Source of the DNA: Amoebophrya sp. A120
Lineage: Eukaryota; Protista; Dinoflagellata
NCBI GenBank assembly: GCA_905178155.1
Contig: CAJINV010000010.1
Span: 3,492,587 to 3,556,586 of the forward strand
DNA: 64,000 nt
Reading direction: 5' to 3'
Part shown: positions 3,001-8,400 of the stretch, in pieces
Numbering within the stretch: position 1 is the stretch's first letter
Layout: the number at the start of each line of letters is the position of its first letter
Position numbers and translations under genes: made by a program
The notes under the pieces: model-generated
Database searches by the model: none
The model's input: the letters and a program-made list of their open reading frames with translations, nothing else
What the model was told of the DNA's origin: nothing

Positions 3001-4708
3001 TGTCCGGGTTTGTCATGCATATTTTGCATGACCCAGGATGTCTGTAATGCATGACCTAGCATCGCAGATTTTTAGAGAGCTTCCTGATGCCTAATCCGCA
3101 TGACAAATGCCCTCCAAGCGTAGCAAAAACTAGACTACTCTTGCTGGTCATGCAATACAGATTTTTTTGGAGTCCGAAGTTAGCATCACAAGTTCCAACC
3201 TCCCAGACCCAGACATTTTTGCATTTGATACCGGGTATCGTCGAACAAAAATTGCTCGAAATCTTCCTCGATGTTTTCATCATTCTCACCCTTGTATCTT
3301 GGTCTTCTTTCACTTGCTCCAAGAACTACCCCAGCACCAGCTGGCGCACCATCATGATCAGGATCGTCTTCACTATTAACGTCATCGTCATAAAACTCGT
3401 TTTCCTGCCCGAAGGAGCTGTGCAGTCGTTTCGTGGTGCTTGCTTTCTGCTGCTGATTTCCTTTCGTGTTATTTGTTCCTGCAGTCATTTTTGCGCTGAA
3501 AAGTAGTTTTTCTTGCTGCATCACCTCCGCAATATCCCCGCTCTGCAGCTCCTCTAGCTTTTTCCTCTTGGACACGTTATTTTCTCGGTCCTCTTCCGGG
3601 TTTAATATCTTCTTCGCGTGGACCGGGCTGTCTTCGTCTTCTTCCAGAATGACCGCGCCAGACGCCCTATCCAAGGAAAAAAGTGTTTATACATTTGTAG
3701 TGAGTGCAGCATCACAAACTTGCCTTGCATGACAGAGTAGAAAACTTGCAATGCAGAGATCATATTAAGCGAAAACACGTATGAGGTGGGGCTCGAAAGC
3801 GTTCTGTGCATGACAGAGCTTGTCTCTGCTGCGTGGAATGCAACACAATGTGGAACTGTAACACTTTTATCTTTGGATACGCCCGGTAGTTCACCGTTCT
3901 CCTTTCGCTGGGCGAGGGGGAGTTCGTGATCTTCTCGGTGGGAGGTCGGTTCTTATTGCCGTTCAACACTTTATTTTTACTAGTGCGACGCTCCTCGATA
4001 AGATTTGCCGGACTCATCGTTCCGGCTGACGACTTGGACCCGACCCGACTTTGCCTCTCCCTCGCGCTTTGCGACTGCAGCCGGACCCCGGGGACGTCGT
4101 ACAGCGCTTCCAGTTCCTTGACCCGTCTCTGCATCGCCTGGGCCTCTATGCATTGCAAATATGTCTGGGTCTGGAAACTTGTGATGCTGGGTGGCGTATC
4201 ATGAGGAGGCCATAAGTGCTGGCTCAGCATGACAAGTTTTTGACCTTCTAGGTGTTGCCTCTTCTGCATGACAAACTGCGTTTCTGCATGACAGAATGGT
4301 GGGGCTCTTGGGTAACGAGCATGACAGATTTAAGAGTCATACCAGATCGAAGCATGACAAACATGCATTCTTCCAGACCCAAACATTTTTGCATGTGATA
4401 GCCTCTGAAACTTTGCCCGCGTTGTCCAGTTGTAGCGCCTTCTTGTCGTGCTTCAACACCCGGTTTTCGGCCTTCAAAATCGCATTGGTGGTCTTTAACC
4501 TCGTGATTTCCTCGCTCACGTCCAGATAAAACGAATCGCGAGGTGGATAGTTGGCTGCTGCACCATCATCGTCAGCAGCTGGTGTGGTTGTAGTACCAGC
4601 TGCGTCACCAAGCTGCTTGTGTTGGTCCTCATACAACGGACCACTTCTACTTCTCGCACGACCACCTGCGGTGGCGGATTTTCTATCCTTTTTTGCCTCC
4701 AAAGACAT
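1..4708 (-). CDS. Coiled-coil/low-complexity hypothetical protein, 3' part (runs off window start); 9 introner introns
   Basis: Removing each TIR element plus one 5-bp TSD joins ORF pieces in frame (..GKVSEA|QAMQRRVKEL..VNYRA|SGAVILEEDED..FDDTR|EKKLSRRS..). Either continuous with 5435-13149 or a separate gene from ATG 4708. Confidence 0.75.
134..451. mobile_element. Introner family B (TIR core GAAAAATCCCCCCTCCCCATAT)
   Basis: TAT..ATA TIR; TSD cctgc; this TSD happens to allow GT-AG. Confidence 0.9.
528..819. mobile_element. Introner family A (TIR core TGYAAAWATGTCTGGGTCTGGAA)
   Basis: TIR; TSD gtctt; internal 26-bp tandem duplication at 591-637. Confidence 0.9.
1055..1273. mobile_element. 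Introner family E (TIR core AAAAAAASTGTGT.AGTGTAAC)
   Basis: TIR; TSD taaat/caaat. Confidence 0.85.
1421..1636. mobile_element. Introner family D (TIR core GTGCACAACTCCCCCTCCCCCTCATTTGT)
   Basis: TIR; TSD gcgga. Confidence 0.9.
1691..1949. mobile_element. Introner family A
   Basis: TIR; degenerate TSD tctta/tcgca; frame restored on removal. Confidence 0.8.
2031..2351. mobile_element. Introner family B
   Basis: TIR; TSD cccct. Confidence 0.9.
2969..3230. mobile_element. Introner family A
   Basis: TIR (left end TGT); TSD ccggg. Confidence 0.9.
3668..3879. mobile_element. Introner family E
   Basis: TIR; TSD cgccc. Confidence 0.9.
4147..4400. mobile_element. Introner family A
   Basis: TIR; TSD gcctc. 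Confidence 0.9.
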
Positions 4709-4880
4709 CAACTACAGAAAACATCTGCAGCGTACCACCCAGAATAAAGTGTTCCGCCATGGTTGTATGGGGCGCGGATTAATATCGCGCACCAGGCCAT
4801 GCTGCAGAGCCCTACTTCTCCCGACGGAAAACTAAAGGGCTAAGAGCGAAGTTCGCGCCCGCCATGCCGCGCGAAGGGTG

Positions 4881-4938
4881 AAATGGGACTGGGCATAACA
4901 AGTCACGACACAGTACCTTGAGCCAAAAGCCTCCCACT
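4881..4938 (-). ncRNA. Second, divergent SL RNA gene-like unit (degenerate)
   Basis: Minus strand reads AGTGGGAGGCTTTTGGCTCAAG|GTACTG; imperfect inverted copy of the plus-strand unit including upstream region (arms about 4867-4983 and 5048-5165); Sm site A>C. Confidence 0.6.
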
Positions 4939-5093
4939 GCAACACACTTGACATCGATTTCATAATCCACAAGTCTCAATAAGCGACGCTTCAGGTTGAC
5001 ATCAATGCTCTGAATGCCGAAAACCTGTCGCGCCAGATCTGCACACACTTAATTGAGACTTGTGGACTAAAAGATCAATGTGTCAAAGCTTGC

Positions 5094-5151
5094 GATGTCG
5101 GCATTTTGGCTCAAGGTACAATGGCGTGAGTTGCTACGCCCAATCCCTTTT
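5094..5151 (+). ncRNA. Spliced-leader (DinoSL) RNA gene-like unit
   Basis: GATGTCGGCATTTTGGCTCAAG (18/22 to DCCGTAGCCATTTTGGCTCAAG, intact ATTTTGG Sm site), then GTAC donor, GGCGT..ACGCC hairpin and TTTT; about 56 nt, like dinoflagellate SL RNAs. Confidence 0.75.
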
Positions 5152-5434
5152 CACCCCTCACGCGGATTGACAACCACAGCGACGCACCCAGGGGCCGCCC
5201 GCGTGGAGGACACGCATGCAGAAATTTTTGGCCCCCTAGGTACCACCGGATAAGTGCTTCTCTGTTCCCTCAGCACGAGCGGCTTTATCCAGCATTTTAC
5301 TTCTCCATGTGATGCCGCTTTTTCGCCTTGTTTCGCGCCCTAGTTTTTCTGTTTGTGATTTTTCAAACCGAACCAACTGCCACGACCTACTTGCGGCCGC
5401 GCTTTGCCCTTTGGTTTTTGCGCTGGAACCCGCG

Positions 5435-8400
5435 TCAAAAAGTAGAATTGTGACCCCGTGCGTAAATTGAAGTACTTCTCGCACGACCACCTGCGGTGGC
5501 GGATTTTCTATCCAGGTACGGGTTGTCATCATCATTCAAAGAACGTGCCTGCTCCTCCTGCTCGTGGCTCGTTTTACTCGTCTCCCCCGTTTTGCTTCGT
5601 GCCTTCTTCAACGCCTTCAAAATGGCCTCTCGTTCTTCCCGCATAGCAGCTTCCATCGCCTCTAGTAACGCTTGCTGCCGTTCCTCCGCCAGCTCCTGGA
5701 TATTCACCGGCGAAGTCGTCCCTGACATAGGATCAATACGGTTCGGAAGACCGACGTTGTCTTCTAACTCCTTACACTTCCGCCGCCACTCGCTGGCCTG
5801 CACCCACGACCGGTTGATTTGCTCGTGCAGTCTCGCGATCTCTTTCGTGACCGCCTGTTCCAAATCAAATGCAAAAGTGTCTGAGTCTGGAAGATTCTGA
5901 GACTTGTCATGCACATTTTGCATGAGCCATGATGTCTGTGATGCATGCCCTAGCGTCACAGGTTTCCTGAGGGGTTCTTGATGTCTATTCCGCATGACAA
6001 ATGCCCTCTCCGCGTGGCAAAAATTAGAATCCTTTTGCTGCTCATGCAACACAAATTTTTTAGACATCCAAATGCAGCATCACAAGTTGCATTCTTCCAG
6101 ACCCAGACACTTTTGCATTTCATATTCCAAATCCGAGATCCAAAACCGGTCCGGCGCCAACTGCTCCTTGTTGATGCTGGTCCCGCTCTATTGTGCGGAA
6201 AAATCCCACCTCCCAATATGGAAGCAGCATGCCTCTGAAAATTTGTGATGCTGATTTAAAGCCACATCTTGTGTTTGTCTTGCAAGAAGGCAAATCCAGA
6301 TCCAGAGAGCCCGCCGCATTATGCAGGCTGCTTGTGATGCTTTTAAACCCATAGGGCAGACGTCTGTCAACATGCTAAAAAGCGCCTACCCCAGAACACC
6401 CCCGCCCGGGCTTTGCAACTGCCTGCAGTCCCGTGCTGCAAGACAAAGCTGATTTGTGTACACAAATCCCGGATCAGAGACTTCCATTTTGATATTGGGA
6501 GGGGCGGGGATTTTGCATTGTGATACGTTCTGGTCATTTTCCAGAACCTCGTCCTTTTTCGTTTGCAGCAACTTATCCAAGATCGGGCTGCCGGTCGTGG
6601 CCGCCTGGCCGGGGAGCCGCCGGTACGGGCTGTTCGGGGACAACTGTTTTTGCTCGATGGACCTCACTTTCTTGATGAGCCCCGCGTTCTGTTCCCGCAG
6701 GATGCGGAGTTGGTTTTCGTAGTTTCGCTTGAAAAGCCCCAATTGTTTCTCCTTCTCCAGCAATTCCCCTTATCAAATGTAAAAATGTCTGGGTCTGGAA
6801 AAATGCAGAGGTTTGTGATGCAGCTTTGGCATGACCCAGAAGGTCTACCATGCACGCCCTAGCATGAAAGGTTTTGAGAAGGTCTCCTAATGCGTCATCC
6901 GCATGACAAAGCCCTTCTTTCGGTGGCCGGAAATGTGCACCTTTTGGCTTACATGCATGACAGATTTTTGTGTGATGTGAAATGCGCATCACAAGTTGCA
7001 TCTTTCCAGACCCAGACATTTTTACATTTGATACCCCTTGCAGGTCCTCGATTTCCTTCTCGAATTTGTATGGGAGTGCACAACTCCCCCTCGTTTGTAT
7101 TGCTATTGCATGAACAGCAATACAAGCGTCAGCAGGAATACAGGTTTTGCATGACAAATTTGTACACGAGTGTCGGGCTATTTGCGCTGCCAGAACTTGT
7201 CATGCTGGGAAACTAAGGGCAGGGCGTCCCTTTGTAAATTACGTCGACAAACTCTTAACCGCGTACCCGGTAAACTCCAAAACAGAAATTTTGAACAGCG
7301 TGATTTCTACCAGAACTTGTCATGCAAACAGTGCCAAGAGGCAATGGGTGAGTTTGGTATTTTGCATGACAAATGAGGGGGAGAGGGAGTTGCGCACTCT
7401 CATAATTTGAAATTCGGATTCAGATTCTTCTTGGAAATCCTGGTGTTCGCTGGACCTGCTGCTCCGGGTGAAGTAGTAGTTGACGTTGCAAATGCGTTGT
7501 TTATTTCATCCTCGTCGTAGTTGAACGGGCCGGTGCTGTCTATCCAAGGAAAAAACTGTGTTAGTGTCACTCTCCCTGGCTGACAGCATCACAAATTTGC
7601 TCTACACAACAGAGACAACCTGTCATGCGTGGCTTGCAAGGGAAAACACACCTGAAAAGAGGACTTCATGGTTGTCTGGCATGACAGGTGTAGCTCTGTT
7701 GCATGTTCTGCATTACAGAGTTACACCTACACAGTTTTTTTCTTGCATATTGTCGTTCTGCTGATTATTATTCCCCGTCACCACCGCTTTTGCCAGGGCT
7801 TGCTGGAAAAAGCTCTCCTGCTTTTTCAGCTCCCGGTAATGTTCCTGCGTTTCCTTGCGTATTGTCTGTTCTAATTGTTCTATCCCACGAAAAAAGTGTT
7901 ACAGTTACACACTTGTAGGCAATTCAGCAACACAAATGTCCCTGCATGAGAGAGAAAACTTGTAATGCAGAAATCCTACGGGGGGAAAACACCTATGAAG
8001 CGAGGCTCCTGTGCATATCCGGCATGACAGAGCTTGTCTGTCTTGCTTGGCCTGCATAGACTATGTGTGTAACCGTAACACTTTTTTCTTGCAATATGTT
8101 CGACTTTTCCCGCCGAAATGTTCCCAAACAGGCGGTGTTGGTGCGCGAGGCAGGATTGCAGAAAATTCTTCCATATGGATTGCAAATATGTCTGGGTCTG
8201 AAACATTGTGAGACTTGTCATGCATGTTTTTTTTTTTCATTGGGCCCCACTCTGTGTCTTCGCATGTAAATTCATCACTAATTTAGGAGGCCGGTGTGCG
8301 TTACTTAACATGTGATGCAGTTCTACGAATTCACCTGCCTGCCGCAGCAGGATGATCAGGGCCGACACCTTTCACACAGTTAAGCATGTTTTGCTTGTCA

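Follow-up and report, generated by a model that had tools for sequence, protein, structure and literature searches.

We found that the head-to-head derivatives of spliced-leader (SL) genes at 4867-5165 of the window, the whole 64,000-nucleotide stretch of the Amoebophrya sp. A120 genome that was analysed (C10:3492587-3556586 in a 115.5-Mb assembly of 401 contigs), are probably the internal cargo of a non-autonomous element of ~1.9 kb with terminal inverted repeats (TIRs), present here as a young truncated exon insertion that is spliced out as an intron. A minus-strand gene recently received, in one of its coding exons, a 778-bp copy of this element that is truncated at one end; the insertion duplicated 41 bp of the exon, and the element is removed from the mRNA as an in-frame 840-nt intron with non-GT-AG borders. 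Each of the two units appears to comprise an upstream box, a variant leader, a core with Sm site and splice donor, an SL intron and a 3′ box. Positions without a contig prefix are those of the window.

A repeat search of the window returned an imperfect inverted repeat at 4867-5165 with arms of ~114 nt (4867-4980 and 5052-5165) around an unrepeated centre of 71 nt (4981-5051). The arms pair in two pieces, 4867-4928 with 5104-5165 (62 nt, 84% complementary) and 4951-4980 with 5052-5081 (30 nt, 83% complementary), between which each arm holds a 22-nt block that has no match in the opposite arm. The window has exactly two occurrences of the 12-mer TTTTGGCTCAAG, at 4917-4928 on the minus strand and at 5104-5115 on the plus strand, and GTAC follows directly in both places, as the initial annotation had described for the two arms of a single inverted repeat. 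The count of this 12-mer is not significant by itself (at least two matches at one mismatch arose in 19 of 100 shuffles); significant instead are the long inverted repeat and the BLAST homology of its arms to the canonical SL gene on C11.

The plus-strand unit (5094-5151) has a leader-equivalent at 5094-5115 (GATGTCGGCATTTTGGCTCAAG) with the Sm site ATTTTGG inside the exon at 5103-5109, a splice boundary between 5115 and 5116 with the donor at 5116-5117, a 5-bp hairpin at 5123-5140, a T-run (TTTT) at 5148-5151 and a 3′ box that extends to about 5165. The Sm site, donor, hairpin and T-tract that had been attributed to the plus copy are thus all present, and the position of the T-run predicts an RNA of 58 nt. 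The minus-strand unit (4881-4938) has its leader-equivalent running from 4938 to 4917 (AGTGGGAGGCTTTTGGCTCAAG), its donor GT at 4916-4915, an intron-homologous part that reaches to a T-run at ~4881, interrupted in this unit (CCCATTTC), and a 3′ box from 4880 to 4865; its Sm site is CTTTTGG, with the U-run and GG kept and C instead of A as the first base. Upstream of both cores at a fixed distance lies Box A (TTGAGACTTGTGGA), at 4966-4979 on the minus strand and at 5053-5066 on the plus strand, where a ATCAATGT box follows at 5074-5081. TGTCAA is also common to both arms, with an offset of 2 nt, so the two upstream blocks that the annotation had assigned to both arms were correctly read.

Both arms thus carry an exonic Sm-binding site of the AUUUUGG type (ATTTTGG in plus, CTTTTGG in minus) and a GT donor right after ..CAAG that leads, as GTAC, into an SL intron. 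Neither has the 22-nt DinoSL exon DCCGTAGCCATTTTGGCTCAAG: the leaders begin GATGTCGGCA.. and AGTGGGAGGC.., and only their last 12-13 nt match it. The units stand as an inverted pair within a mobile element rather than in a tandem array or an SL-5S arrangement. Rfam gave no match over the whole window at gathering score; over 4600-5600, with E-values up to 10 allowed, it recognised no SL or snRNA family, and the palindrome drew only miRNA-like matches attributable to chance.

We assessed the ancestry of the arms by whole-genome BLAST. Both align with the intron and 3′ flank of the canonical gene on C11 at 84-85% identity over 62-64 nt (E 5e-12 to 1e-11). That gene is the only one of its kind that we found: the canonical DinoSL 21-mer has 51 exact occurrences in the genome, most of which continue into unrelated sequence and are therefore relics, while TTTTGGCTCAAGGTA has only 19 genomic occurrences, of which exactly one comes with the canonical leader (C11:2800774-2800797, minus strand). 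At four more canonical or near-canonical leader sites GT follows, though not GTA; this is the number that chance predicts for ~60 relics, and an intron-containing query recovered none of the four. A single canonical SL gene agrees with the statement that each Amoebophrya genome (A25/A120) has a single complete DinoSL coding sequence (PMC7789003).

Because the arms are homologous to the canonical SL gene with its intron included, they are, as judged from sequence, SL RNA gene derivatives and not retroposed mRNA relics. In a relic of the latter kind the leader would be joined directly to an mRNA body, whereas both arms keep the SL intron; the argument that the retained GTAC intron speaks against such a relic was sound, this intron being homologous to that of the canonical gene. 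The search of the genome with the unit also yielded the homologous SL loci that had been expected, including the sole canonical gene on C11 and tandem arrays of variants on C1. Of the proposal of head-to-head SL genes with variant 5′ ends, the ancestry, orientation and variant leaders stand, while the independent locus does not, the pair being an internal segment of a mobile element.

Around the canonical gene (C11:2799274-2802288), a degenerate SL-like unit (GGCCATTTGGCCGAG.., with the same 3′ box) lies ~120 nt upstream, at about 1380-1450 of the reverse strand, which suggests the remnant of a tandem pair; ARAGORN found no tRNA near the gene. Genome-wide, many canonical or 5′-truncated SL relics adjoin ..CATGCA / ATGCAATACAAA-type sequence and have one downstream body in common, which fits SL-headed retroposons that target introners.

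The mobile element was recognised from its ends. When the region was compared with other loci by BLAST, homology stopped sharply at 4695 and 5470, and walking outward in the other copies defined a non-coding element of ~1.88-1.89 kb with 48-nt TIRs (77% complementary; left end TACTTCG.., right end ..GAAGTA) and no open reading frame longer than 114 aa. Nine copies occur in the genome at at least 95% identity, two of full length (C19:823109-824990 and C6:4751282-4753173) and seven truncated (four from the left, three from the right), with one intact ..GAAGTA end in every truncated copy. The element ends are identical across these two full and seven truncated copies. Besides the window copy, the truncated ones lie on C11 (one), C5 (two) and C2 (three), and among those on C2 are copies that stop within the SL inverted repeat and so lack one arm. 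The window copy (4695-5472, plus strand) corresponds to positions 1100-1869 of the 1882 in a full copy. It is without the left 1.1 kb, and the terminal 13 positions are left only as AGTA after a 9-bp deletion relative to the family, so that of the TIRs and discrete ends seen in several copies it has the right TIR only (5431-5472, plus strand, ending ...GAAGTA). It is 98.97% identical to the full copy on C19 over 776 aligned nt (2 mismatches, 2 gaps); five further copies, which share its sharp ends, match it at 94-96%. Older relatives occur on C14, 79% identical across the left half, and on C3, 70-76% identical with the head-to-head pair kept.

The SL pair is one of three internal palindromes in the element. 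In a full element (locus L002), the others are a palindrome with 120-nt arms at 1036-1285 (86% complementary, 10-nt spacer) and one with 33-nt arms at 417-489; with the TIRs and the SL pair, they make the element almost wholly a set of nested inverted repeats. A further segment of ~82 nt within the window copy (5160-5241, plus strand; element query positions 1565-1646) is dispersed over at least 25 other genomic places at 88-96% identity and is covered by RNA contigs. Its Sm-like AATTTTTGG is flanked by GGGGCC and GGCCCC; the segment has no Rfam match and could be a small RNA of a new type or a small repeat. Elsewhere in the window, 48587-48670 matches the right-end region of the element at 76% and ends ..CTTCAAGTA, probably as the terminus of a related element family.

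The window copy is flanked by a perfect target-site duplication, the left repeat at 4648-4688 being identical at 41 of 41 positions to the right repeat at 5473-5513. The left repeat was host exon and is now intronic; the right one stays in the mRNA as exon. At the truncated junction, a six-base filler TTTTTT (4689-4694) precedes the start of homology at 4695 and lies outside the family consensus; fillers of 6, 8 and 29 nt were read at this junction in three copies. Target duplications occur at six of the seven truncated copies (41 bp in the window, and 38, 33, 32, 30 and 23+ bp) and at neither of the two full copies nor at one truncated copy (L003), and since these three have none, more than one insertion route may exist. 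Variable, long and absent at three copies, the duplications are not the fixed short ones of a TIR transposon. We considered LINE-type retroposition as the sole reading, given the variable truncation, constant end, long duplications and A6/T6 at the junction, and rejected it because poly(A) is absent from the full copies, which carry TIRs instead, and truncation can be from either end. The 41-nt repeat as a duplicated exon was rejected as well, the homology of the other copies ending exactly between the repeats. With 2 mismatches and 2 gaps in 776 nt and an intact 41-nt duplication, the insertion is very recent by sequence divergence.

The consequence of the insertion for its host was read from assembled contigs of RNA runs X3 and X7, which are one sample and the source of all splice evidence given here; because these contigs skip six introns, the runs are truly RNA. 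A transcript contig of 5141 nt on the minus strand spans the six introns, with blocks at 3300-3661, 3879-4141, 4401-4625, 5466-5857, 6125-6183 and 6526-6765, which upholds the placement of the pair inside a protein gene and shows that gene to be expressed. Between the exon upstream of the insertion (5466-5857) and the one downstream (4401-4625), both supported by the transcript contig and the open reading frame, the mRNA skips a non-canonical intron of 840 nt with TT..GA borders (4626-5465, minus strand; joint 4625/5466 in X3, at depth 69, and in X7). Spliced out with the element are 22 nt of the former exon and the left duplicate, with zero letters shared at the joint. The right duplicate and 7 nt at the end of the element stay in the mRNA, which resumes 22 nt past the left duplicate. 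The phases of the reading frame show that splicing preserves the frame and shortens the coding sequence by a net 15 nt, and RSRSGPLYEDQHKQ becomes RSTSIQHKQ, 14 residues being replaced by 9; the insertion therefore does not divide the gene into two. From its sequence the host protein looks coiled-coil, and a Pfam search of the host exons, exon by exon, found no domain. The fold predicted for the intron has a 16-bp helix 18-19 nt inside both borders and pairs the SL arms with each other. No splice joint at the SL-like donors (4916/4917 or 5115/5116) was reported in the RNA contigs.

The other five introns of the host gene (3662-3878, 4142-4400, 5858-6124, 6184-6525 and 6766-7033, minus strand, from RNA contig joints) are hairpin-type introner elements of ~217-342 nt, with a TAT start, long terminal inverted repeats and direct repeats of 2-9 nt at the borders, and none of the five has GT-AG borders. 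The 840-nt intron shares with Amoebophrya introners its removal at non-canonical borders and departs from them in length and end structure, being 840 nt long and without a TAT-type terminal repeat, whereas its five neighbours conform to the definition. Recurring pseudo-peptides in the list of open reading frames (FQTQTFLHL / KCKNVWVWK) are translated introner repeats. In the raw RNA-seq runs X11-X13, which have the same species label, almost nothing maps to the host gene apart from introner repeats with loose ends, and these runs probably represent a different strain under that label; X11 and X12 yielded no transcript starts or ends.

We compared the units with their paralogs in an alignment of ten diverged units anchored on the core (both window arms, C11:606, two on C3, three of the 136-bp tandem array on C1, C1:4893585 and the canonical gene), scoring conservation as the fraction of units that share the commonest base. 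Conservation was 0.91 in the core, 0.81 in the 3′ box, 0.80 in Box A and 0.77 in the intron, compared to 0.57 in the leader and 0.45-0.49 in the flanks. The 39-nt spacer from Box A to the core was free of indels in eight of the ten units, the exceptions being the canonical gene, which is without the box, and unit b on C3, where a degenerate box is displaced by 13 nt. Exact matches to Box A number 23 in the genome, against 1 for the control, and 21 of the 23 are at SL-like units. Uniform decay would not give such mosaic conservation, and conversion by the canonical gene cannot maintain Box A, which points to selection on the SL-like units as transcription units, as far as can be inferred from sequence. 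The candidate promoter of the initial annotation gains from the shared upstream box and its matches at SL-like units and loses from the absence of that box from the canonical gene, because of which Box A is at most a putative promoter. A consensus fold of the ten units had no shared structure past 4 bp; since the hairpin of the plus arm is not conserved among them, we make no covariation argument.

Outside the known SL-like units, exact Box A matches lie at C2:6925120-6925132 and C20:939370-939382. On C1, two near-identical tandem arrays in opposite orientation (C1:1854664-1854996 and C1:16438255-16438587; 136-bp period) hold three to four SL-like units with Box A, and two units of these arrays have a leader that is perfectly complementary to the donor region over 8-9 nt (CCTTGAGC..GCTCAAGG).

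If the two units were active variant SL RNA genes, they would produce capped Sm-class RNAs of ~58 nt from a shared bidirectional promoter region, with 22-nt leaders trans-spliced onto a subset of mRNAs, and would resemble the diversified SL systems of Perkinsozoa. Such a reading, which we hold to be rather improbable, draws on the Sm/donor core that is intact in both arms, on Box A, core, intron and 3′ box being kept at fixed spacing across old paralogs, on low-depth RNA contigs that begin near the plus unit (5099-5229) and on precedents for SL diversity in Perkinsozoa (PMC9399869) and Amphidinium (bioRxiv 10.1101/2024.02.20.581179). Against it stands the genomic record of leader use. TTTTGGCTCAAG has 130 sites in the genome (26 for the control), about 60 of them with the canonical leader, and outside the element copies neither variant leader occurs at any of the 130; by this indirect, relic-based test, either leader is found at 0 of ~110 non-gene sites compared to ~60 for the canonical one. 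RNA depth in poly(A)-type contigs is zero across 4640-5041, which includes the minus unit. Over 5099-5470 the depth is 5-14, with values of 5-8 across the plus unit, and the contigs there carry differences that mark other copies or the dispersed 82-nt repeat. Metagenome scans gave no match to the minus leader and, for the plus leader, only 20-mer matches ascribed to chance, in coding-like sequence of two GC-rich contigs that look bacterial. The lack of any secondary structure shared among the paralogs also argues against active genes, as does the plus core, which is altered to CACTTTGG..GTG, with a different Sm site and donor, in four of the seven copies that hold the plus arm and intact in three. 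The minus core is intact in nine of nine element copies.

We accordingly regard real leader donation by the variant units as unlikely. Equally doubtful is a broader proposal, by which an Amoebophrya mobile-element lineage would carry working, promoter-bearing SL RNA genes with freely diversifying leaders and either spread new cap-proximal leaders or use the SL-type Sm snRNP module for itself, for example for tolerance inside genes. If true, it would be the first example of spliced-leader genes that are mobile.

The opposite possibility is that the units are dead pseudogenes, a fragment of an SL gene that was captured by the element and is now drifting, with the conserved blocks reflecting recent ancestry or patchy gene conversion. 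The change of the plus core in four of seven copies, in both Sm site and donor, and the broken T-run of the minus unit fit decay as well as function, and we count them against our preferred reading; every variant unit seen sits in repeated or mobile DNA, and the variant leaders have left no genomic trace. Simple drift is nevertheless difficult to reconcile with flanks and leaders at a random level of similarity beside a 14-nt box, a 15-nt core and a 3′ box that are 80-100% conserved, nor would it be expected to leave the 39-nt spacer between box and core free of indels in eight of ten units, and conversion by the canonical gene cannot explain a Box A that this gene does not have. We consider dead pseudogenes improbable.

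It is highly improbable that the inverted repeat is simply an RNA hairpin for the element or intron, compacting the insert or recruiting Sm proteins for splicing, with SL ancestry as no more than a source of Sm-site- and donor-like sequence: the predicted fold does pair both arms along their length, a separate predicted 16-bp helix joins the intron ends 18-19 nt from each border, the other five host introns are hairpin-type introner elements and Amoebophrya genomes have yielded no U1 snRNA (PMC7789003), but the splice borders lie far from the SL-like donors, where no joint was reported, the end helix is partly host sequence specific to this site and so cannot be a feature of the family, and the conserved Box A spacing in the tandem, non-inverted arrays on C1 would be left unexplained.

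We thus favor SL-gene derivatives carried as cargo by the TIR element. Under this reading, the SL-like units act, or until recently acted, as small transcription units that would have been selected within the element lineage, as suggested by box, spacing, core, intron and 3′ box being conserved while leader and flanks are randomised. The spliced leader of the cell would come from the single canonical gene on C11 and not from the element units, which probably contribute little or nothing to mRNA leaders, and the insertion itself may have used an unusual long-duplication pathway of this genome.

SL RNA genes are normally fixed housekeeping arrays, and we know of no description of promoter and 3′-end signals for SL transcription in syndineans. 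The locus is a concrete, datable example of how variants of SL genes may arise and disperse, and Box A and the 3′ box are candidate promoter and 3′-end signals for SL transcription in this group. It also adds another very young exon insertion that became an in-frame, non-canonical intron, which lends support to the idea that mobile DNA is tolerated in this genome by being spliced out. Should the variant leaders be used, they would be relevant to the way in which diverse leaders and caps control translation in dinoflagellates. Our literature search for SL-like genes inside dinoflagellate transposable elements found no paper describing them.

Links between small-RNA genes and mobile DNA are known from other systems. 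SINEs derived from tRNA, 7SL or 5S genes have an RNA-gene head at their 5′ end as promoter, and SLACS/CZAR elements insert into trypanosomatid SL genes. The window element is similar in joining mobile DNA to a small-RNA gene with its own putative promoter, and differs in that its SL-like units are internal, paired and outward-facing inside a TIR element.

The window units agree with DinoSL RNA genes (Zhang et al. 2007, PMC2606063) in the last 12-13 nt of the exon, including an exonic Sm site, and in the AAG/GT donor, a conserved 3′ box, an intron 84-85% identical to the canonical one and a T-run ~58 nt from where the RNA is expected to begin. Their leaders are unrelated to DCCGTAGCC in the 5′ 9-10 nt, their upstream box is absent from the canonical gene, they form an inverted pair in a mobile element instead of a tandem array, and the genomic-relic test gave no sign that their leaders are used on mRNAs. 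A variable 5′ part and a kept 3′ part of the exon are also seen in SL paralogs of Perkinsozoa, where two SL types are proven on transcripts and extra genomic variants are without evidence of use (Alacid et al. 2022, PMC9399869); the window variants differ in lying on transposable DNA and in that none is proven on transcripts. Retroposed mRNA relics with DinoSL, as reported from Slamovits and Keeling 2008 in PMC7789003, have the full canonical leader joined directly to the mRNA body. Like the roughly 60 relic sites in this genome, the window units are copies of SL sequence outside the SL gene, but they keep the SL intron and have non-canonical leaders.

As an intron, the insertion resembles DNA-transposon-derived introners, in which a non-autonomous TIR element in an exon becomes a new spliceable intron. 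In such introners the GT-AG sites come with the insert or are created by it, and the duplications are short and of fixed length (Gozashti et al. 2022, PMC9860276; 2025, PMC12130899), whereas the window intron has TT..GA borders and the duplications of the element are variable, at 23-43 bp. Amoebophrya introner elements are ~240 nt long, with terminal inverted repeats of 8-20 nt (TAT.. in A120), direct repeats of 3-5 nt and terminal hairpins that are thought to help them to be spliced out (Farhat et al. 2021, PMC7789003). The window family is set apart from them by its size of 0.8-1.9 kb, 48-nt TIRs, 41-bp duplication and SL-gene cargo, and by intron borders that lie 18-19 nt outside the predicted helix. 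It is like them in being repetitive DNA within genes that is removed at non-GT-AG borders, with helices (predicted in the window intron) that join the intron ends, and it occurs in the same type of genome, in a gene whose five other introns are typical introner elements of the TAT type.
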